DNA of 64,000 bases from IMG/VR virus record IMGVR_UViG_3300020195_000009, positions 1-64,000 of that record, one strand, 5' to 3'. Of the stretch, positions 3,246 to 48,483 are shown in pieces. The position numbers were made by a program, and so were the translations under genes. Under the pieces are notes generated by a model. That model was not told where the DNA came from. It searched no databases and saw only the letters and a program-made list of their open reading frames with translations. Positions within the stretch are counted from its first letter, which is position 1, and each line of letters opens with the position of its first letter.

Positions 3246-3304
3246 TACACCGGGTTGAAGGTTGAACTTGAATCAAAATTGCGGTCGGTCGAGGGTCCGG
3301 TGTA
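3246..3304. promoter_or_regulatory. Divergent pair of CGGTGTA motifs serving the DUF1848 gene (minus) and the MazG gene (plus)
   Basis: TACACCG at 3246-3252 and CGGTGTA at 3298-3304, within about 10 nt of each start codon. Confidence 0.7.
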
Positions 3305-3313
3305 TGCGGGGGC

Positions 3314-3961
3314 ATGATCGACCTGAACCAACTCGCCCAAGTCTCGAACACCATTGCCTGCGAAAAGGGCTGGTGGGACGGCTCACCCCGTTCAGTAGCT
3401 GCCTTGACGCTCCTCATGCAATCGGAAAATGCCGAAGCTCTGGAGGACTACCGAGCCAACAAGGGCCTGAAAGACATCTGGTACGAGGTGAAGTATGAGC
3501 CGGATCCGGGAACCCTGTTGGCGAACCCTGTCAAGGCCAGCATGACCGAGGAAGAGATCCAGCGGATGATAGCTACGGCGCAAGCCAACAACTTGAGCGT
3601 CAAGATCCTCGATCAGAAGCCATGCGGAATCGCCGTGGAGTTAGCAGATACGATTATCCGAGTCGCTGATTTCGCGGCTCATCGAAGCCTAGACCTCAAC
3701 GTGGAGTACGATAAACTCCCTTCCGGGCGGCCCTCCTTGGACTTTGAGGAGGCATTGGCGGAGTCAAACTACTGGTTCTCCAAGGTTTGGCATAGCCACA
3801 AGCACCGGGACGAAGGCGGCATCGCCTTCCAGCTCGTCAAGTCCGTGGACTGCCTTCTCCTCATGTGCGCCAACAAGGGCATTGACATCGAGAAGGCGAT
3901 CGAGATCAAGACCGCTTTCAATAGAACGAGACCCGTTAGGCACGGTAACAAAAAGATATAG
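3314..3961 (+). CDS. MazG-like NTP pyrophosphohydrolase
   Basis: EKGWWD...SENAEALEDYR, IAVELADTIIRVAD, and IDIEKAIEIKTAFNRTRPVRHGNK, typical of all-alpha NTP-PPases. Confidence 0.8.
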   Translation: MIDLNQLAQVSNTIACEKGWWDGSPRSVAALTLLMQSENAEALEDYRANKGLKDIWYEVKYEPDPGTLLANPVKASMTEEEIQRMIATAQANNLSVKILDQKPCGIAVELADTIIRVADFAAHRSLDLNVEYDKLPSGRPSLDFEEALAESNYWFSKVWHSHKHRDEGGIAFQLVKSVDCLLLMCANKGIDIEKAIEIKTAFNRTRPVRHGNKKI

Positions 3962-4231
3962 CTTTGGTGCCGGGAGTGCCGCCGCCTCGGAAGATACAAC
4001 CTCACCCCTCAACAATTCGCTGATTTACTAGAGAAACATCGGGGTATGTGCCCCCTCTGCCTCACGAGAAAGGCCGACGTGATTGATCACGACCACAGTT
4101 GCTGCTCAGGTCAACGCTCGTGTGGGGAGTGCGTCCGAGGGGTTATCTGCAAGCAGTGCAACGCAGCGTTGGGGATTCTGACTGAACAAGGGGTGAGGCG
4201 AGCAATGCTCTACTTGAGGAAGCCCAAATGA
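3962..4231 (+). pseudogene. Endonuclease VII-like (His-Me finger) domain with no start codon before its N-terminal part
   Basis: In frame from 3962: LWCRECRRLGRYNLTPQQFADLLEKHRGMCPLC...IDHDHSCC...VRGVICKQCNAALG. The first ATG (4046) lies inside the domain. Confidence 0.7.
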
Positions 4232-4893
4232 ACTGGAGAGAGGAAGCCAAGACCCGAACCCACATCCTCGGAGCTGACGAGTCGGGTTTCGGGTCCTATG
4301 CGGGGCCGCTCGTCGTTTGTGCCGCCGTCGTACCCGTCAATTGGAGCCGACCGAGGGGGCTTAACGACTCCAAGAAGATTCGGAAGGCGGAGCACGAGCG
4401 GCTCTTCTACATCCTGAAAGACGTGATCCCGTATCAGGTCGAGATGGCCCAACCGGATGAGATCGACCGGGACGGGATCATGCTCGCCCTGAAGAGGTGC
4501 TACCGTGTGGTGGTGCGGGGCTTACTGGAGCGATTCCCAGACGCCCTGGTCATCCTGGACGGTGAGGTGACCCTCCGAGCCGATGGGATTCAACACCTGA
4601 ACTTCCCAAGAGCTGACGGTGAGGTCCCTGCGGTCATGGCCGCCAGCGTCCTGGGAAAGTTCACCCACGATCGCTACATGCTCAAACTCGCTGAGGAATA
4701 TCCTGGCTACGGATTCTCAAGACACTGCGGCTATGGCACCCCAGAGCACGAAGCGGCCATCGTAAAGAAGGGCATGTGTCCGGCTCATCGACGAAGCTAC
4801 GTCCCAATGGGTAAGCTCAAGACAGCCGAGGAGATGTCTCAAGCTCATGATGAAGGGATGGTAGTTGACGACGAAGGGACTACTCCCGAGTGA
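4228..4893 (+). CDS. rnhB: Ribonuclease HII
   Basis: GADESGFGSYAGPLVV, LNDSKK, ILDG, AVMAASVLGK, YPGYGF...GYGTPEH...HRRSY. Confidence 0.9.
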   Translation: MNWREEAKTRTHILGADESGFGSYAGPLVVCAAVVPVNWSRPRGLNDSKKIRKAEHERLFYILKDVIPYQVEMAQPDEIDRDGIMLALKRCYRVVVRGLLERFPDALVILDGEVTLRADGIQHLNFPRADGEVPAVMAASVLGKFTHDRYMLKLAEEYPGYGFSRHCGYGTPEHEAAIVKKGMCPAHRRSYVPMGKLKTAEEMSQAHDEGMVVDDEGTTPE

Positions 4894-5317
4894 CGTAATC
4901 CAAAGCCTCGCCAGCGCTCTTTACCAGCTCTGAGAAGTTGGAGTGCTGCTCTTCGAGTTGGTCGAGGATCCACTCCATCGCAGGCTCCGTCCGAAGTTGA
5001 CGGGAGAACTGGACGGCTCGGTGCATCTTGGCTTCCGCCTCTTGCATCTCCTCCAACATCGACTTGGCGCTTCGGATGATGTTCGGTTCGATGGGCATCC
5101 GAGCGCTCATGTATCGGGCAACGACGCGGTTGACCATGGGACCCATCTCCGCCTTCTTCCCTTTGAGGTACTCATTCGTTGGCTTGTGGCAGGAGTCCGA
5201 GCCTGGGCTGACGTGCTTACAAAACACGGACCAGGCGGTTGCCCATGCCTGCTCGTCACTGTACGACGGGTTGGACTTCTTGATATCCTTGAACAGCTCA
5301 TCGACCTTAGCCGGCAT
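4880..5317 (-). CDS. Hypothetical protein carrying an RVVARY motif
   Basis: ORF track; motif VNRVVARYMSA; converges on rnhB with a 14-nt overlap. Confidence 0.7.
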   Translation of the reverse strand: MPAKVDELFKDIKKSNPSYSDEQAWATAWSVFCKHVSPGSDSCHKPTNEYLKGKKAEMGPMVNRVVARYMSARMPIEPNIIRSAKSMLEEMQEAEAKMHRAVQFSRQLRTEPAMEWILDQLEEQHSNFSELVKSAGEALDYVTRE

Positions 5318-5395
5318 CGTTGGTCACCCCTACATAGCGGATGATCCCCGCATCACGAGGGTCCGCTAGAGTGTAGATGTGCCACTGCATCATGG

Positions 5396-5818
5396 TCAGG
5401 TCAGAAACTTGAGGATGGCCTCACCAACGTCCTTGTAACCAGGCTTCTTACCTGAGTCCTTCAAGGCCTTGGTCACCCCGTCGGTGAGCTTCTTGAGGTC
5501 CTTCTTGCCCTTGTCGGACTCCAGGTACTTGCGAGCCGCCTTACCCTTGTCGGTCTTGGGTTCGGGAGCCCCGTGGAACCAATCATCGAGAGCTTCTCGG
5601 ACGTCCTTCATCCCGAACTGACCCGCACCACCCTTCTTGGCCTCAGCGCTCATCCCGTGGGAGAGGTCGCTGATCGACTTGACGTTGTCTTGGAGGAACT
5701 TGGTTACAGGATCCGACTCGGCGGCGAACCGAGTGACAACACGGCGAACTAGCGCCTCCGGGGAGGACTTGGACTTGGCGAACCGAGCCGCTACCCGTAA
5801 CGCAAGAACATCGCTCAT
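5396..5818 (-). CDS. Hypothetical Lys-rich protein with RVAARF and RVVTRF motifs
   Basis: ATG at 5818 forms an ATGA overlap with the stop of 5815..7170; begins MSDVLALRVAARFAKSKSSPEALVRRVVTRFAAE. Confidence 0.75.
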   Translation of the reverse strand: MSDVLALRVAARFAKSKSSPEALVRRVVTRFAAESDPVTKFLQDNVKSISDLSHGMSAEAKKGGAGQFGMKDVREALDDWFHGAPEPKTDKGKAARKYLESDKGKKDLKKLTDGVTKALKDSGKKPGYKDVGEAILKFLT

Positions 5819-7170
5819 GGGTTCACCCCATGCAACGCCTGGAAGAAGTCGTAGGGGCTCATCTCGGCGATCTTGGCGGCTTCCCTGAGGGTGTAGCGAT
5901 CCCGAAGATCCATGAGGGCTGCTGTCTTCGGCTCCTCCCACTCCTCAGCCGCCTTCTCCATGGCGATGTGGACCCAGGAGGGTTCCCCAGTCAGGCAGTT
6001 GGCAAGCTCTCGAATGGCCGTCGCTGCGTCAAACGTAAGCCGACCCCCGCCCCGCATACGGGTGAGGTTCTTGGGGGCCCCTTCCGAGATTTCCCACTTC
6101 AAGACCCACGGAATGAACACCCGCTCCATCTTGGTGATGGTGTCGTCCGAGAGCTGTTCCGTCTTACCGTTCACTCGGACGAAGAAGTCGTACTGATGGG
6201 CGTTGTTGATGTGCTTGAGTTTGCCTTCATCCCTCAGCTTCTTCATTCGGGTGAGGCGCTCTTTGCTGTACTTGGTGAAGACCTCGATTACGCTCTTCCG
6301 ACCGGCAACGGACGGGTCTTCATCATTGAGAAGTCCCGTGCCGACGAGGATCTCTTTGAGGCCAGCCCCACCCGACCGAGGCATCTTCTCGACGATGGCT
6401 TGGGTGGGCTTACCCCCCGGCCAAGCGAGGAACTTCTTCGGAGGCTTGGGGGAAATCCCGTCAGCCCAAGCCGTCCCAACGGTCTTCAGGTACTTCGGGG
6501 AAATCTTGGCGATGTTTTGAGCGAGGGGGACGTCCACCATGCTCGACTGCCAATCCTCTTCGACCTTGATGTACTTGCTCTCCGTATCTGTTTCTTCACG
6601 TTTCCAGTAGAAGCCCTCCCCTCGCTCCCGGAGAGCCACGAAGATGTGCTTCTGTTCCGTCTGTCCGTAGAGAACCCAAACCCTGTACCCAGGGTGGGTT
6701 GAGGAGAAGGATGACTTCGGCCAAACGAACTCAGGGATCGAGATAAACTTCCACTCCACGTTGGCAGGTGCCCCAGAGTCACCCCACGCCTTGTTGAAGT
6801 CCTGACCCTTATCCACCGCATCCGGCTCTCTCGCCTTCGGCTTCTCTCGCTTGGGAGCCGGCTCGGGGGTCGCTCGCCCCTTGCCCTCCAAGACATCCTT
6901 GGCCACGTTGATGTCGACCATCTTCTTGGGGTCACCCCCGCGATCAGGATGGTTCTCGAACGCCTTGGTTCGGTAAGCCTTCGTGACTTCCTCAGAGCTG
7001 GGGGAAGCAGTTGGAGGGAAGCCAAGAATGGTCTTGGCTTCCTGCATCGACATGGCGATGAGAAGACGAGCGTAGCGTTCCTCGAAGAACCTGGAGGCTA
7101 CCCTGTACTCGATTCGGTTGCGAAATCGAGCTACAACATGGCGTACGATTCGGATGTCGTCAGGCTGCAT
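5815..7170 (-). CDS. J-domain (DnaJ-like) protein with N-terminal HVVARF/RVASRF motifs and an unknown C-terminal region
   Basis: AKTILGF...EEVTKAYRTKAFENHPDRGGDPKKMVDINVAKDVL, with an intact HPD motif. Confidence 0.85.
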   Translation of the reverse strand: MQPDDIRIVRHVVARFRNRIEYRVASRFFEERYARLLIAMSMQEAKTILGFPPTASPSSEEVTKAYRTKAFENHPDRGGDPKKMVDINVAKDVLEGKGRATPEPAPKREKPKAREPDAVDKGQDFNKAWGDSGAPANVEWKFISIPEFVWPKSSFSSTHPGYRVWVLYGQTEQKHIFVALRERGEGFYWKREETDTESKYIKVEEDWQSSMVDVPLAQNIAKISPKYLKTVGTAWADGISPKPPKKFLAWPGGKPTQAIVEKMPRSGGAGLKEILVGTGLLNDEDPSVAGRKSVIEVFTKYSKERLTRMKKLRDEGKLKHINNAHQYDFFVRVNGKTEQLSDDTITKMERVFIPWVLKWEISEGAPKNLTRMRGGGRLTFDAATAIRELANCLTGEPSWVHIAMEKAAEEWEEPKTAALMDLRDRYTLREAAKIAEMSPYDFFQALHGVNP

Positions 7171-7214
7171 GGATAGGCGTCTCTGCTGTGGCAGCGCCTA
7201 TCAAAAGATCCCTG

Positions 7215-8498
7215 TCAGGCCTGTTTGACTTCTTGCTCCGAATTCTCATCCCGAAGAGTGTGGACCGCCTGACCCGTCTTGAGGGTTTGCTCCGTGATGA
7301 GTACCCGCTCAATCCTCGTGTCCCCAGGGAGGTCGTAGGAGAGCTGGCGAAGTGTAGACTCCACGATGGATCGAAGAGCACGAGCCCCAGTCGGGCGGGT
7401 CTTGGCTTCTTTGGCGATAGCCCGCAAGGCTTCAGGCTCAAAGTCCAGGTTCACCCCATCCATTTGGAACAAGGCCTTGAATTGCTTGACGATAGAGTTG
7501 CGAGGGTCCGTGAGAACCCGGACCATGTCATCCTCGGTCAACTCCACCGTGGTCGTGAGAACCGCCAACCGACCCATCATTTCGGGGATGATCCCGAACT
7601 CCAAGAGATCCTCTTCGGTGGTGGAAAGGTAGGTCTTGGTCTGGTCGATCTTCTCACGGGCCGAGGCTCCGAAGCCGAGACGAGACCCCTTGTTGATCCG
7701 AGCTTCCACGATGGGCTCGATCCCCGCAAACGAGCCCGCACAGATGAACAGGATGTTCGTGGTGTCGATCGTATCGTAGGCCGTCATCATACCGGCCTTG
7801 CCGGCACGAGGTACGTTGACCTTCGACCCCTCCAAGAGCTTCAAGAGCGACTGCTGGACACCCTCTCCCGTGACGTCACGGTACCCGGCTCGGTCCCGAC
7901 CACCCTTCCGTGCGATCTTGTCGATCTCATCGAGGAAGATGATGCCCCACTCCGCCCGTTGGATGTCCCCTTGAGCTTCCTGAATGAGCCCCTGGAGCAA
8001 CGTCTCTACATCATTGCCAACGTAGCCAGCTTGGGTGAGCCCCGTCGCATCCCCGACGAAGAACGGAACGTTGAGCATCCTCGCAATAGTGCGGGAAATA
8101 TGAGTTTTACCCGTGCCCGATGGACCGAGGAGAAGGATGTTGCTCTTGTCGATCTCGACGTCCTCTTTCTTGCCGTCGACTTCGATCTCGGTCTTCCCCT
8201 CCTTCGACTTTCGGCGCTTGAAGTGGTTGTAGACCGCAATGGCGATGTCCATCTTGGCCTTGTCTTGGCCGATGACGAAGTCGCTGAGGTAGGCCCGGAT
8301 TTCCTTGGGGGTCTTGAGGGCCTCTTCCTTGGCCTTGGTCTCGAAGTTTCCCTTGCGGGACCCAGCCTCCATCTCTTTGGTGGCCATCTCGACGCAGCGG
8401 TTGCAGATGAACGGACCCTCCTCAGGGTCCGCAGCAATGAGGTTTTTCACCTCGTTCCTGGGCCTTTTGCAGAAACCGCAGCAAACCGGATTGCTCAT
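7215..8498 (-). CDS. clpX: ATP-dependent Clp protease ATPase subunit ClpX
   Basis: C4 zinc finger (CGFC...ICNRC), Walker A GPSGTGKT, pore-1 GYVG, Walker B IFLDEIDK, pore-2 RDVTGEGVQQSLLK, LGF loop, sensor II GARALR. Confidence 0.95.
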   Translation of the reverse strand: MSNPVCCGFCKRPRNEVKNLIAADPEEGPFICNRCVEMATKEMEAGSRKGNFETKAKEEALKTPKEIRAYLSDFVIGQDKAKMDIAIAVYNHFKRRKSKEGKTEIEVDGKKEDVEIDKSNILLLGPSGTGKTHISRTIARMLNVPFFVGDATGLTQAGYVGNDVETLLQGLIQEAQGDIQRAEWGIIFLDEIDKIARKGGRDRAGYRDVTGEGVQQSLLKLLEGSKVNVPRAGKAGMMTAYDTIDTTNILFICAGSFAGIEPIVEARINKGSRLGFGASAREKIDQTKTYLSTTEEDLLEFGIIPEMMGRLAVLTTTVELTEDDMVRVLTDPRNSIVKQFKALFQMDGVNLDFEPEALRAIAKEAKTRPTGARALRSIVESTLRQLSYDLPGDTRIERVLITEQTLKTGQAVHTLRDENSEQEVKQA

Positions 8499-8508
8499 AC
8501 TTGATCCT

Positions 8509-8515
8509 TACACCG
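8509..8515 (-). promoter_or_regulatory. CGGTGTA motif upstream of clpX
   Basis: CGGTGTA-10 nt-ATG; one of 14 such upstream sites. Confidence 0.65.
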
Positions 8516-8517
8516 GA

Positions 8518-9444
8518 TCAGGAGCCCATGAGGGCTTCAAATCGTTCGATGCGATCTTGGGCCCATTCCCCCTTGAGCCCGAAGTTTGAGATGGCGAAAA
8601 GCTCAGCAAAGGCCTCACCTTCCTTCCTACTATACTTCGAGGTCCACCACTCAGGGCGCTCAAAATCAACGGAAAGGCGGTTTTTTCGCTCATACCTATG
8701 CCCAAGCTCATGGATGAGGATGTAGTCCAGGGCTCCGTAGGTACCACTGGTTCGCTTGAGGACGTTGGGGGTGGCTCGGACGTACAGGGTATCCTCCCCC
8801 GACTTGTAGACCCCTCCTGCGGTACCTCGGAACTCCTTGGGACCTGCCAGGGCAACCTTGAGTCCCCCAAGGGCCTTCCGCCGCCACCCCTTCACTTCGT
8901 CGAAGACCGCCTCCATCGAGGTCACGTAATGGCCGATCTTCTTCTGGTCTAACCCTACAAGGTTTAGGTAGGTGTTGCCCCCTGCCTGGATTTCCTTGGG
9001 AACAATCTTGCCCCCCTCGTTCGAGAAGTACCGGACGAGGTCTCCAGCGAGGGGTTTGATCTCTGACTTCCAGAGGCGCTCCGCCTCCGCTCGGCTGTTC
9101 ACTTGAGGCATCTTGGCCCCCGAGTCTCGCAGGAACCAGTGGAATTTACTGGCTTTATCTTTGAGATCCTTCTGCCCCTGGGGGGTCTTCGGAGTCTCGA
9201 AACGGAAGTTGTCTTTGAACCACTCGGCTGTTTTAGCGGCCTCTTCGGGGATGAAGTCCGCGAAAAGGCGGTCCATCTTGGTGTTCAGCTCATCATTGAG
9301 CGTTGAACTGAACATGAACTTGGCTGCCACCCGGCGAGCCATCCGGTCCTGGTAGAAGAAGGCGACCCGCTCAACGATGTCCACGGGCTCTCGAAAGGGG
9401 GCTGATTCCGAATGACAACCCCAAGCTATTTCTAAGTCCGTCAT
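8518..9444 (-). CDS. Zincin-type metallopeptidase-domain protein with N-terminal RVAFFY/RVAAKF motifs
   Basis: LIHELGHRYE (HExxH) plus downstream EAFAELF. ATG at 9444 forms a TGATG overlap with the upstream stop. Confidence 0.75.
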   Translation of the reverse strand: MTDLEIAWGCHSESAPFREPVDIVERVAFFYQDRMARRVAAKFMFSSTLNDELNTKMDRLFADFIPEEAAKTAEWFKDNFRFETPKTPQGQKDLKDKASKFHWFLRDSGAKMPQVNSRAEAERLWKSEIKPLAGDLVRYFSNEGGKIVPKEIQAGGNTYLNLVGLDQKKIGHYVTSMEAVFDEVKGWRRKALGGLKVALAGPKEFRGTAGGVYKSGEDTLYVRATPNVLKRTSGTYGALDYILIHELGHRYERKNRLSVDFERPEWWTSKYSRKEGEAFAELFAISNFGLKGEWAQDRIERFEALMGS

Positions 9445-10223
9445 CAACTCACTTCGGCATACACAATGCAATCCGTGCTCCACACGAGGCCTTTGCAGTG
9501 AACCTTCCCACAAGGTTCAACGACGCAAACCCCACCCCCACCGAACCGATTGGGCTTGTCACCTTCTTCGCCGTAACGGTTGGATACAACAAGGAAGACC
9601 TTGTTCTCCATAGCGAAGTCCATCCAAGCAGTGGCCGGGAAGCCCCCCTCACCCCAGTTGGATGAAAACGCTACGATGTCTGCATCCCCTGGGGAGTAGA
9701 GGTTCTTCCAATCGTCATTCACCTTGTCACGAACGTCTCGACAGATAAGAAGCCCCACCTTCTTTTCAACGCCGTCGATCGTGGCTTGAACGATAGGGGG
9801 GTTGGCCCGGCCGGACTCTGCCCATAGGAAGTCATTGGCCCAGCGGTTGATCTTCCGCATGCTTTCGAGGTAACCAAAGGGATCAACGTAGACCTGGCTG
9901 TTGTACAGCTTCCCGGTTCCCGCCTCTTCCTCGATCATCCCCCACACGAGGTGGACGTTGAACTTGGAGGCTAGGGCCGCCATGAGCCTCGTTGTAGGGA
10001 TTTCGTCGTTCGCTCGGATCGCCGGCTCCAACGTGATGATCTCAGCGTCAACCCGTGCCTCTTCCGGGCTCATGTATGAATACCCAGTAGTTGCAAGCTC
10101 CGGCATCACGATAAGCTTCGCCCCCGCCCCGGCAGCCTGCTCGATGAGCTTCACAAGCCGACGCTGATTCTCACGTTTCTGACGGAAGACAGGGGCGAAC
10201 TGGATGGCTGCTACGAGGGGCAT
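9444..10223 (-). CDS. Carbon-nitrogen hydrolase (nitrilase superfamily)
   Basis: Start MPLVAAIQFAP; catalytic triad motifs VMPELATTGY (E), RKIN (K), GLLICRD (C); VVSNRYGEE. Confidence 0.9.
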   Translation of the reverse strand: MPLVAAIQFAPVFRQKRENQRRLVKLIEQAAGAGAKLIVMPELATTGYSYMSPEEARVDAEIITLEPAIRANDEIPTTRLMAALASKFNVHLVWGMIEEEAGTGKLYNSQVYVDPFGYLESMRKINRWANDFLWAESGRANPPIVQATIDGVEKKVGLLICRDVRDKVNDDWKNLYSPGDADIVAFSSNWGEGGFPATAWMDFAMENKVFLVVSNRYGEEGDKPNRFGGGGVCVVEPCGKVHCKGLVWSTDCIVYAEVS

Positions 10224-10228
10224 CGGGC

Positions 10229-10885
10229 TTACCAGTTGGAGAGTTCCTGAGCCTTGCTGCCGTCGAAGGGTACGAGGATCTTCTTCGTACGAAGCCGGTT
10301 GACACCCCACCGACGAGTCGCGACCTTGGCGGCGTCTTTGACGAGGCTAGCTTCAACCGAACTAGGGATCTTCACCCCAAACTTCGACTCGACCCAACGA
10401 AGCTCGTTTTTGACGGTATCTTGAACCGAAGGCTGACCCTTCGTGTACTTCGTCAAGATTTCAGCGACCTTCAACGAATGGTCCACGGTGTTCCCGCCCG
10501 TAGGATCGGAGCTTCCGGTCGGCTTCCAACTAGGATCAATCACAAGCCCCTCAAGCTGTTCACGCTCGGGGTTGGCCGGACGGTACGCCATCTTCTCCGC
10601 AAACATGGGGAGGATGCCGAACCGCCACGTATTGAGCCCCATGATGGCCGAGTTGATGACGTAGTTGCGTGGAGGATCCCACCACGCCCCCTGCTTGTCC
10701 TTTGCGAATCGGGACAAGTTGGCGTTGAGATAAGCCTCCATCGCTTGGTATGAAGACTCTTCCTCTTCGGCCTTAACCAGCCTCATCGCCTCGTTAGCGA
10801 GGAACAGACGCTCCGCCTGAACGAGGTGCCCGGCCTTCATGAAAGCTACAGCGAGGGAGCGGATCTCTTCGGCGGTCTTCTTCAT
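10229..10885 (-). CDS. Hypothetical protein
   Basis: Start MKKTAEEI with GGAAGGA SD upstream. Confidence 0.65.
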   Translation of the reverse strand: MKKTAEEIRSLAVAFMKAGHLVQAERLFLANEAMRLVKAEEEESSYQAMEAYLNANLSRFAKDKQGAWWDPPRNYVINSAIMGLNTWRFGILPMFAEKMAYRPANPEREQLEGLVIDPSWKPTGSSDPTGGNTVDHSLKVAEILTKYTKGQPSVQDTVKNELRWVESKFGVKIPSSVEASLVKDAAKVATRRWGVNRLRTKKILVPFDGSKAQELSNW

Positions 10886-20460: not shown

Positions 20461-20467
20461 TACACCG
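20461..20467 (-). promoter_or_regulatory. CGGTGTA motif upstream of the AAA ATPase gene
   Basis: Lies just after the 16-bp hairpin; reads CGGTGTACATT. Confidence 0.6.
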
Positions 20468-21140: not shown

Positions 21141-21776
21141 TTACTCTACACCGTTTCCCCCGAAACGAACAGTAGCTCCTCGTTTGACGACGACAACCCC
21201 TTCTTCGGGAGCTTCGGCGCCTTTCGGGCCAGCCCATGGGTCTTTGGGTGGCGTCGGAGAAGATCCTGACAACATTCTACCACTTTGGCTCGGAGTGTTC
21301 AGAGCTAGAAGTTGAGGCGTTAGCCTCACTGGCTCCTTTTTTTGTGGATCCTCGGTTGAAACATGAGCCTGAGGTTGGGGTTTTGGGGGACTCTCCGGTA
21401 CCATTTCGATCGGAGGTGGGGCTTCTTCCACCGGGAGACTCATGATCGGAATGGGAACCGAGACCGCAGGCTCCACGAGGTCTCGTGGGTCCATCCACGC
21501 AGATTGCCCTCTTACCGTAGGCAGGGGCCCAGGGTCAAACATCTTGAATTGTTTGCCTTGGATCTGCGAAAACCTTGGGTCAGAGGGATCCATTCGAGGG
21601 ACTTCCGAAAAGAGCCGCTTCTCCCAGGTCATCACCCGCTGGTCGAACTTGCTGGTACCATGCTGAGACCGGGTACATTCGGGTTGAACGCACCGATCAC
21701 AAAACTGCAACTTGAAGTCCTCGTAAGGGACCTGTTGATTGTTGCACTCCCCGAGCTGGTCCAGACGCCTGACCAT
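21141..21776 (-). CDS. Hypothetical protein with N-terminal Cys cluster and Pro-rich C-terminus
   Basis: C...FCDRCVQPEC; Pro-rich tail. Confidence 0.65.
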   Translation of the reverse strand: MVRRLDQLGECNNQQVPYEDFKLQFCDRCVQPECTRSQHGTSKFDQRVMTWEKRLFSEVPRMDPSDPRFSQIQGKQFKMFDPGPLPTVRGQSAWMDPRDLVEPAVSVPIPIMSLPVEEAPPPIEMVPESPPKPQPQAHVSTEDPQKKEPVRLTPQLLALNTPSQSGRMLSGSSPTPPKDPWAGPKGAEAPEEGVVVVKRGATVRFGGNGVE

Positions 21777-47838: not shown

Positions 47839-48483
47839 TCAGAAGCTCAAACGCCAGACGATCTCCAGCGTGGAAGTCGCTGGTTTCGAGATTATTGGGA
47901 ACGTTAAATAGTTCACCATCGTCTCTTTTGTGGTCAAATCGACCAACGGGTTGTAGGGCCCGTTTGGGGGAAGCACGGGGTTGCGAATGGACAGGTTCGT
48001 CGAGATGTTGCCCCCAAGGAGGCCCATCTCGACAAGAGGTCCGACCGCTTCAGACTCCGTGTAGATGGTCGAGAAGTCGACCACGTTTGTCGGGATGGCC
48101 GTTGGGACACCTGCGGCGTCGATGAACTGTGTCGTTGAGAACGTCTTGCGAGTCAACTCCGAGTAGAGAGACCTCTGCGTGTTCGTTGGAGCTGGCGGAG
48201 CCAGTGGATTCCAGCCGATGTCACCCGTCCCGACTGCAAGGACAAAGCACCCCTTCGTGGGCTCTGCGTTGTCCTTCATCAGACGAGCCACAAGGATAGA
48301 GGCATCCTTGACAATGATGTTCTTGATCTCCCGTCGGTCTTGCTCAACCCCGGAGGCCCCATCCCGAAGGATGAGGGAAACATCACCTCGAATGCCCGGC
48401 GCTTTCTCCTCGTAGCGAGACTTCAAGGCTCCGAAGAACCGAGAGCCTACGCGGGAGAACACCTCATCCAATTTCATGTGCAT
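47839..48483 (-). CDS. Tail-collar/baseplate fibre-attachment-like protein
   Basis: NIIV...LAVGTGD...PAPTNTQRSLYSELTRK...EAVGPLVEMGLLG, a tail-collar (DUF3751-like) pattern. Confidence 0.6.
   Translation of the reverse strand: MHMKLDEVFSRVGSRFFGALKSRYEEKAPGIRGDVSLILRDGASGVEQDRREIKNIIVKDASILVARLMKDNAEPTKGCFVLAVGTGDIGWNPLAPPAPTNTQRSLYSELTRKTFSTTQFIDAAGVPTAIPTNVVDFSTIYTESEAVGPLVEMGLLGGNISTNLSIRNPVLPPNGPYNPLVDLTTKETMVNYLTFPIISKPATSTLEIVWRLSF

Follow-up and report, generated by a model that had tools for sequence, protein, structure and literature searches.

A portable peptide tag on unrelated proteins encoded around clpX in a jumbo-phage clade: a possible client signal for the phage ClpX

Introduction

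Four neighboring genes of an uncultured jumbo phage raise the question of why otherwise unrelated proteins would share one short peptide, and what would read it. The genes lie in bases 1-64000 of the 286-kb contig IMGVR_UViG_3300020195_000009, a 64-kb stretch that we analyzed computationally and refer to as the window. They encode a small protein (p145), a lysine-rich protein (pLys), a J-domain protein and a zincin metallopeptidase. The peptide, which we call the tag, has a core such as RVAARF. The original prediction took it for a capsid-targeting and processing signal of a set of injected proteins; it did not mention that another gene, clpX, lies amid the tagged ones. We propose here, as a reading to which we give somewhat less than an even chance, that the tag is a recognition signal, either a degron or a tether, for this co-encoded ClpX, whose specificity appears from its sequence to be altered.

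Results

The seven hexapeptides on which the original prediction was built all translate from the minus strand at the positions given in Table 1, and the four proteins that carry them have, as had been claimed, no similarity outside the tag. A comparison with shuffled proteomes, suggested at the time as a check, favored the motif. Among the called proteins of the window, the regular expression [RK][VI][AVS].[RK][FY] had 6 matches where 0.45 were expected (at most 4 in any of 500 shuffles), and in the loci of relatives it had 38 where 3.7 were expected. We built a position-specific scoring matrix (PSSM) from the tag instances and used it to score proteins of the window and its relatives. The four tagged window proteins score 20-36, and the best of all other window proteins scores 8.9; real proteomes gave 53 matches and shuffled proteomes 0-2. 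Identical tag residues share a codon in only 18 of 72 pairs, and none of the DNA repeats checked in the window coincides with the tag copies. Hence, selection acts on the tag as a peptide.

The six-residue core is present, but the conserved tag is longer than the original hexapeptide and spans approximately 12-18 residues. The consensus of 39 ungapped instances is D-[PA]-L-[AVI]-x-[RKN]-[VI]-[AV]-x-R-[FY]-[LM]-x-[AS], and a longer form, PLxEFxDALIVR-NVVARF, was found at internal and C-terminal sites. Tag peptides include MSDVLALRVAARF, MSDVLALRVAARFAKS, MDPLVNRVVARYKIA and PLRDFQDTLIVRNVVARF. An exact DNA pattern for MDPLxxRV[AV]xR[FY] had 5 matches in IMG/VR, and an alignment of 8 tag sequences used as query retrieved 4 IMG/VR loci. 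Two candidates were rejected: (i) a possible fifth tag, RVGSRF, at the N-terminus of a structural-module protein (47839-48483), which we consider a chance match because it is not kept in 23 orthologues; and (ii) a reading of the tag as a twin-arginine or other signal peptide, as inspection revealed no hydrophobic h-region after it. The alanine noted earlier at 1-10 residues after the motif proved uninformative.

Nucleotide and protein searches of GenBank phages returned no relative of the region, of the J-domain protein or of the zincin; only ClpX matched, at no more than 46% identity over most of its length. Relatives were drawn from IMG/VR, and their loci are labelled L002, L004 and so on. 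The tag is kept in orthologues from approximately 20 related jumbo-phage genomes, mostly at the N-terminus and often in tandem. Zincin orthologues (25 IMG/VR loci, on jumbo-phage contigs of up to 530 kb) mostly start with a tag, for example MDPLAVRVVARFLAAS and MSIALRVAARFMIAS, and a recognizable tag, usually starting at residue 4-10, is present in 43 of 120 zincin homologues from a database of 5.8 billion proteins. Most of the 89 homologues of the J-domain protein have RVAxR[YF] directly before the J domain; 26 of them score at least 14 N-terminally, many copies fall below the PSSM threshold, and some homologues bear a tag at the very C-terminus, either in addition or instead. A methionine lies 3-11 residues upstream in 31 of 52 tags against a background of 15%, a comparison with some circularity, as the flank is itself part of the PSSM.

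Not all tags are N-terminal. For four of the 52, the stop codon is no more than 20 residues away, and several are internal in proteins of L017 and L004. In L017, tags occur in Gly-rich linkers and at the C-termini of proteins of 586, 995 and 2233 amino acids. These tagged giants carry ART-PolyVal, InPase, HD and zincin domains, and because of this domain content we regard them as true polyvalent proteins sensu Iyer et al. (PMC5512222). In the window, N-terminal placement holds for pLys, the J-domain protein and the zincin, but not for p145, whose copy is at residue 64 of a 145-residue open reading frame (ORF), behind a mobile N-domain, and would be N-terminal only if an internal start were used. 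The N-domain and C-domain of p145 are separate genes in L004, where the C-domain gene begins MDPLVNRVVARY, and in P0143 the N-domain is fused to a J-domain protein. With a portable peptide, a strong N-terminal bias and conservation across orthologues, the earlier idea of an address-type signal on unrelated proteins is borne out.

The strongest association that we found for the tag is with a co-encoded ClpX. Between the CN-hydrolase and RNase HII genes of the window, four of the five genes are tagged and clpX is the exception. A block of CN-hydrolase, zincin, ClpX, several tagged genes and RNase HII recurs in L002/7, L004, L005, L011, L019 and L027, and L013 has a shorter block in changed order; CN-hydrolase is the conserved upstream neighbor in L002, L004, L005, L011, L013, L019 and L027. 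We count L030, L040-42 and the pairs L005/L054 and L019/L047 among the loci with this block as well. Up to eight tagged genes stand in a row (eight in L002/L048, seven in L004/L070), and ClpX is the sole untagged member.

A profile search with ClpX sequences of the clade yielded 80 IMG/VR loci. Among the 21 lineages with a ClpX identity of at least 53%, 15 have a tag scoring at least 18 within 3 kb of clpX; of the remaining six, five have weaker tags in flanking genes (L061 is marginal, at 6.9) and one is on a contig that ends too early. On the contigs of L008 and L015, the zincin gene has been relocated by approximately 30 kb, and even there clpX is directly followed by a tagged gene (L058 and L055). 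Around more distant phage clpX genes (identity of 49% or less), tags were found at none of 61 loci, and the clpX neighborhoods of phages G and Phosso have no tags, J-domain or zincin. Likewise, none of 23 structural-module loci of the same clade (286 kb in total) has a tag, nor does window 33-64 kb, whose very large ORFs we take to be the structural half.

We compared the substrate-contacting loops of ClpX between 22 clade loci and approximately 50-61 other phage ClpX sequences. The window ClpX aligns with E. coli ClpX over residues 6-410 (E = 7e-109), and its Walker A motif is present. In E. coli ClpX, Arg228, His230 and Thr199 touch the ssrA degron; the R228A substitution shifts specificity from ssrA to an N-degron, and human ClpX, without these residues, leaves ssrA-tagged proteins undegraded (PMC7652416). 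The RKH motif is missing from all 22 clade loci, and all nine clade loci matched by the pore-2 pattern have Tyr at the Thr199 position. In contrast, the other phage ClpX proteins keep RKH or RKN in 41 of 50 cases and S-[IL]-[TS]-RDV in nearly all. Among the lineages compared, that of the tag clade is the only one with both degron-contact sites remodeled. The LGF and GYVG loops are invariant in the clade ClpX alignment, so that ClpX of this clade probably still docks ClpP; the zinc-binding N-domain is conserved as well. Judged from its loops, the clade ClpX should read a signal different from that of E. coli ClpX.

The clpX genes of several relatives hold an in-frame intein of approximately 350 residues within the Walker A P-loop (GPSG/CHRKGQ...VTHN/TGKT, slashes marking the junctions), with a homing-endonuclease-like middle; the interrupted gene reads through 779 codons without a stop. 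We found it in L002:6338-8674 (contig shared with L007/L048), L011/L043 and L041/L042/L057/L059, and there is none in the window clpX.

AlphaFold2 (AF2) models were made of two carriers. The model of the J-domain protein has a mean predicted local distance difference test score (pLDDT) of 92.6 and puts both tags on one long helix, residues 3-39, which runs into a canonical J domain. In the zincin model, pLDDT exceeds 85 in the core (residues 50-309) but stays below 50 over residues 1-47, which contain both tags and appear as an undocked helix. Both models thus show the tag on a terminal extension that is exposed, as expected for a docking motif. It is a portable short linear motif, probably in the form of a short amphipathic helix on a flexible terminal extension. 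Self-inhibition of the zincin by its own tags was considered and rejected, as AF2 leaves them undocked from the active site.

The J domain is supported by a Pfam DnaJ match above the cut-off (1.6e-6), by HPD at residues 74-76 and by a Foldseek match to Tim14 (template modeling score 0.74, root-mean-square deviation 1.1). The C-domain of this protein (5818-6819, residues 118-451; pLDDT mostly >90) matches neither a PDB fold nor a known family, and a search of the ESM Atlas with it returned low-scoring J-domain clusters only. Going by the model, it may be a new fold, conserved in approximately 89 metagenomic homologues. Its C-terminus, SPYDFFQALHGVNP, was considered as a decayed tag and set aside, as it is the conserved C-terminus of the entire J family. 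For the zincin core, the best Foldseek match is to the PPEP-1/Zmp1 and lethal-factor class of gluzincins and is weak (E ~0.1); there is no Pfam match. HELGHRYE and FAELFA are invariant in 20 zincin homologues. The zincin, which has tags at residues 26-31 and 38-43, has a start codon (ATG, 9444-9442) that overlaps the CN-hydrolase stop codon. The pLys start codon (ATG, 5818-5816) similarly overlaps the stop codon of the J-domain gene; its tags, at residues 8-13 and 26-31, score 29.6 and 23.4 with the PSSM. Neither pLys nor p145 has a Pfam or PHROG match.

The p145 N-domain (...NPSYSDEQAWATAWS...) looks ChaB-like by eye and has no Pfam match. It is a small mobile module, encoded either alone or fused ahead of a tag and varied cargo domains (L004:15920-16588, P0143, L029:2546-3151). 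The zincin of L004 has another small domain, PF18905, at the equivalent position.

The tagged cluster sits within a module for nucleotide metabolism and replication. A profile search of window 1-31 kb identified DNA polymerase, DnaB-like and other helicases, CN-hydrolase and RNase HII, and two further ORFs there have the provisional labels ThyA and DHFR. A short element, CGGTGTA, is characteristic of this half. It occurs 11 times in the window against 4.4 expected (none of 100 shuffles reaches 11), is restricted to the replication half (694-30922; for example 3246-3252, 20461-20467 and 21147-21153) and typically precedes a start codon by 10-25 nt, in the orientation of the gene. We consider it a candidate early/middle promoter or translation-initiation element. 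The original prediction had argued for late expression from a T-rich motif thought to mark structural genes. This argument did not hold: the TTTTGATA-type element (YTTTGATW) is not enriched, with 8 copies against 4.8 expected, and wherever it recurs upstream of a gene in that gene's own orientation, the gene belongs to the replication half. Between clpX and the J-domain gene are 44 nt (7171-7214) in which TTTTGATA precedes an inverted repeat, TAGGCG...CGCCTA, whose end is 3 nt from the ATG of the J-domain gene. This repeat could be a regulatory hairpin within a putative clpX-J-pLys-p145 operon.

Several neighbors and relatives of the tagged genes deserve a record of their own. Just outside the tagged cluster, on the opposite strand and next to RNase HII (4228-4893), are a small Cys-rich ORF (4046-4231) that looks HNH-like by eye and an ORF labelled MazG-like (3314-3961) without a Pfam match; in several relatives, RNase HII and the latter ORF likewise bound the tagged block on its downstream side. 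A tagged protein of another relative (L009:8976-9998) has a 2H phosphoesterase domain (LigT, 2_5_RNA_ligase2, weakly Acb1-like) followed by two tags and a Cys-rich tail, and could be a counter-defense enzyme that degrades nucleotide signals. Several Lys/Pro/Glu-rich proteins (L002:11274-12704, L004:12267-13628, L004:13696-15927, L032:3010-3735, L058:9197-10600) have a second conserved motif approximately 8-12 residues after the tag, roughly (M/F)EH(P/A)(S/T)(P/E)EAxxKYLxxHPxADxxxHxV. No Pfam family covers it, and pLys of the window holds only a faint version (SSPEAL). Adjoining the tagged polyvalent proteins of L017 is an ORF of 1104 residues (L017:16984-20298) with apparent intein-type insertions and two ...VHNC junctions, whose PHROG matches are only to intein-bearing families. 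The same locus has, between its polyvalent genes, two TnpB-like ORFs of the IS200/IS605 type (5854-7146, minus strand; 7723-8949, plus strand).

Table 1. Positions in the window of the tag cores, the genes around them, the ClpX loops and the upstream element of clpX
Feature	Position	Strand	Carrier or description
RVVARY	5111-5128	-	p145
RVVTRF	5726-5743	-	pLys
RVAARF	5780-5797	-	pLys
RVASRF	7087-7104	-	J-domain protein
HVVARF	7123-7140	-	J-domain protein
RVAAKF	9316-9333	-	zincin
RVAFFY	9352-9369	-	zincin
p145	4880..5317	-	N-domain, residues 1-57; tag GPMVNRVVARYMSA at 5102-5143 (core 5111-5128); C-domain of 80 residues
pLys	5396..5818	-	140 residues, Lys-rich; two N-terminal tags, SDVLALRVAARFAK at 5774-5815 and PEALVRRVVTRFAAE at 5717-5761
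J-domain protein	5815..7170	-	451 residues; tags at residues 11-16 and 23-28 (7084-7143); J domain 6886-7053; C-domain of 330 residues
clpX	7215..8498	-	427 residues, untagged; Pfam AAA_2, zf-C4_ClpX, ClpB_D2-small
Zincin metallopeptidase	8518..9444	-	308 residues; two N-terminal tags, ERVAFFYQDRMARRVAAKFM at 9313-9372; HELGH 8698-8712
CN_hydrolase	9444..10310	-	untagged; Pfam CN_hydrolase 2.2e-26; translationally coupled to zincin
ClpX C4 zinc-binding N-domain	8379-8483	-	
ClpX GYVG pore-1 loop	8016-8027	-	
ClpX pore-2 loop, GYRDV	7872-7886	-	Tyr replaces E. coli Thr199
ClpX RAGKAGMM	7785-7808	-	replaces the RKH loop (RKH aligns to K-A-G)
ClpX LGF loop	7671-7679	-	ClpP docking
CGGTGTA element	8509-8515	-	10 nt upstream of the clpX start codon

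Discussion

What might read the tag? Three features occur together in this clade: a terminal tag that is independent of protein family, close and conserved linkage of tagged genes to clpX, and remodeling of the ClpX specificity loops. Their co-occurrence makes a ClpX client tag the best-supported reading. The tag is, like known ClpX signals, an exposed short terminal peptide transferable among unrelated proteins, and nearly all genomes of the clade have a ClpX with N-domain and pore loops encoded adjacent to it. We also count in favor of ClpX recognition that the cluster lies among early/middle-type genes and that clpX shares their CGGTGTA element.

Under a ClpX reading, the tag would mark family-diverse accessory and effector proteins as clients of the phage's own ClpX. 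It could be read in one of two ways: (i) by the N-domain as a tether, in the manner of the SspB XB tail; or (ii) as a degron in the altered pore entrance. Together with ClpP, presumably that of the host, ClpX would then degrade or remodel the tagged proteins. Tandem tags would raise the avidity for the multivalent ClpX hexamer; bivalent tethering by SspB is a known way of raising avidity. The phage would thereby gain private and timed control over potentially toxic takeover enzymes, such as the zincin, the J-domain protein, the ADP-ribosyltransferase, the 2H phosphoesterase and others.

Several points weigh against recognition by ClpX. The likeness of the tag to the XB tail and the N-motifs of ClpX substrates is weak and was judged by eye, and the helical form predicted for the tag is at odds with the extended one of peptides known to bind ClpX. 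The tag, the synteny and the remodeled loops all come from a single clade, and therefore represent one evolutionary event and not independent replicates. Some tags are far from clpX, namely those of the L017 polyvalent ORFs, those of L029 and those of zincins 30 kb off; in L029, the two tagged proteins are small and encoded beside minor-tail-like genes. Sequences of the zinc-binding domain are alike in strongly and weakly tagged members of the clade. The protease partner has to be assumed to be host-derived, since no ClpP homologue was found in the window or the clade loci (query, phage G gp257). Finally, any reason for a phage to degrade four to eight of its own proteins is conjecture.

The original proposal of capsid targeting, which we now consider unlikely, is the alternative that fares best. 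The tag would dock cargo onto the scaffold, portal or shell interior for injection with the DNA, and might then be removed by a protease. Its carriers are indeed enzymes of the polyvalent type (ART-PolyVal, InPase, HD, zincin metallopeptidase and 2H/Acb1-like domains), a class of proteins predicted to be packaged and injected (Iyer et al., PMC5512222). Phage ClpX itself has been speculated to translocate unfolded proteins or to aid virion assembly (Iyer et al. 2021, PMC7824862). Moreover, every unit of the giant L017 proteins has its own tag, tandem copies would suit binding to a lattice, and the tagged genes of L029 adjoin minor-tail-like genes. These observations are offset by the C-terminal and internal tags, which are unlike the capsid targeting sequence of T4, and by the lack of a consistent cleavage motif after the tag: glutamate within 12 residues is frequent, at about chance level by our estimate, and no common motif follows. 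The genes belong to the replication/nucleotide-metabolism module and have early-type upstream elements, tags are absent from the 23 structural-module loci and from window 33-64 kb, and capsid targeting would leave the remodeled ClpX pore loops unexplained. What survives of the original claim is a portable tag of the address type; a capsid destination, presence in the virion, cleavage and late expression are unsupported.

A combination of the two ideas is conceivable, in which tag and remodeled ClpX form a pair private to the phage and ClpX serves as a loader instead of partnering a protease. It would recognize the tag, unfold the effector and either feed the chain into the procapsid or pass it on to the portal for injection. 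Both the cargo idea and the linkage to clpX would then hold. We regard such a loader as quite improbable.

We give similarly little credence to the tag being the recognition or cleavage site of the co-conserved zincin. The zincin would cut polyvalent precursors, and terminal tags would be remnants of split polyprotein genes. The zincin is the most widely conserved tagged protein and appears to belong to the lethal-factor/PPEP-like class, which has been proposed to process polyvalent proteins (Iyer et al., PMC5512222). Consistent with such a role, the L017 tags are in Gly-rich interdomain linkers of ORFs that themselves contain zincins, and gene boundaries fall on either side of tags. However, cutting 5-10 residues from a terminus has no obvious purpose, N-terminal tags are kept, and often duplicated, across orthologues at 40-60% identity, and in the J family a tag is kept at one terminus or the other, as is more natural for a label than for a relic. 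AF2 does not put the tags of the zincin in its active-site cleft, and the linkage to clpX would be left unexplained.

Finally, a generic amphipathic helix that anchors proteins to the membrane or bundles them with each other, without a dedicated receptor, is also improbable. In its favor, helices that target membranes typically sit at termini and in tandem, both models have long helices that are exposed, and the hydrophobic moment is moderate (0.32-0.71, a range that does not discriminate), with two Arg and the aromatic residue at the polar/apolar boundary. Against it, R, V, R and F/Y are conserved at fixed spacing across unrelated proteins far more strictly than amphipathicity needs, tandem copies form no hairpin in the AF2 models, and neither the clpX linkage nor the ClpX loop changes would be explained.

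In the literature on ClpX degrons, SspB/XB, phage ClpX, jumbo-phage capsid targeting and polyvalent proteins, we found no description of the tag or of a phage-ClpX client set. If the tag is read by the phage ClpX, then an unfoldase with altered loops and a portable tag would form a naturally evolved orthogonal pair that controls takeover enzymes. No substrate or adaptor set would have been defined earlier for a phage-encoded ClpX. Nature would have provided a test of how degron choice depends on the RKH and pore-2 loops, and the pair might be put to use as an orthogonal degron tool. Should the tag route proteins to the capsid instead, uncultured jumbo phages would have their first packaging signal for injected effectors that is defined by sequence, and if ClpX acts as a loader, the tag would be a secretion-signal-like address for AAA+ driven protein packaging, a route not known in phages. 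Under any of these readings, the tag is a search handle for accessory and effector genes, many of unknown function, in approximately 20 huge-phage genomes.

How does the tag compare with known systems? The T4 capsid targeting sequence is strictly N-terminal, and the prohead protease removes it at an L/I-x-E site. The internal proteins of T4 and the cleaved head proteins of phiKZ-like phages resemble the tagged proteins in that short N-terminal leaders occur on unrelated proteins of large phages, host-directed enzymes included. The tag differs from the T4 sequence in occurring also at C-termini and internally, in lacking a common cleavage site and in belonging to genes of a replication module, although most tags do start 4-10 residues after the methionine. 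A second comparison is with the encapsulation peptides of bacterial microcompartments, which are amphipathic helices of approximately 15-18 residues, joined by flexible linkers to the N- or C-termini of unrelated enzymes. They are likewise terminal amphipathic address labels, whereas in the tag residue identity is far more conserved and the context is that of a phage; shell genes of the microcompartment kind were not seen.

The polyvalent proteins of Iyer et al. (2017, PMC5512222) hold 2-15 effector domains per polypeptide. Relatives such as L017 encode multi-domain proteins of this kind, of 586-2233 amino acids, whereas the units of the window are separate single-unit genes and do not belong to this class. 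The window zincin appears to be of the same gluzincin class as the polyvalent processing peptidases, by a fold match that is weak (E ~0.1). Keyword searches of that article gave no occurrence of 'ClpX' or 'DnaJ', and in the parts covered no conserved peptide tag or clpX link turned up.

ClpX recognizes short N- or C-terminal peptides, and its N-domain tethers some clients (PMC12723719). Described signals include the SspB XB sequence RGGRPALRVVK (PMC3983244), N-motif-1 (TAKI/TAKL) and N-motif-2 (MRVVI) (PMC9775585). These signals (SspB XB and the N- and C-motif classes of Flynn et al. 2003) are, like the tag, short, terminal and transferable between unrelated proteins, and there is a loose likeness in R-V-V and in a small-small-basic-hydrophobic pattern. 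By eye, the tag fits none of the five described ClpX motif classes, nor the LRVVK of XB. It is longer than the known signals, predicted to be helical, marked by Arg and an aromatic residue, and sometimes internal. Unlike E. coli ClpX, the ClpX of the tag clade is without RKH and Thr199, and the tag is encoded by the phage, beside its own clpX.

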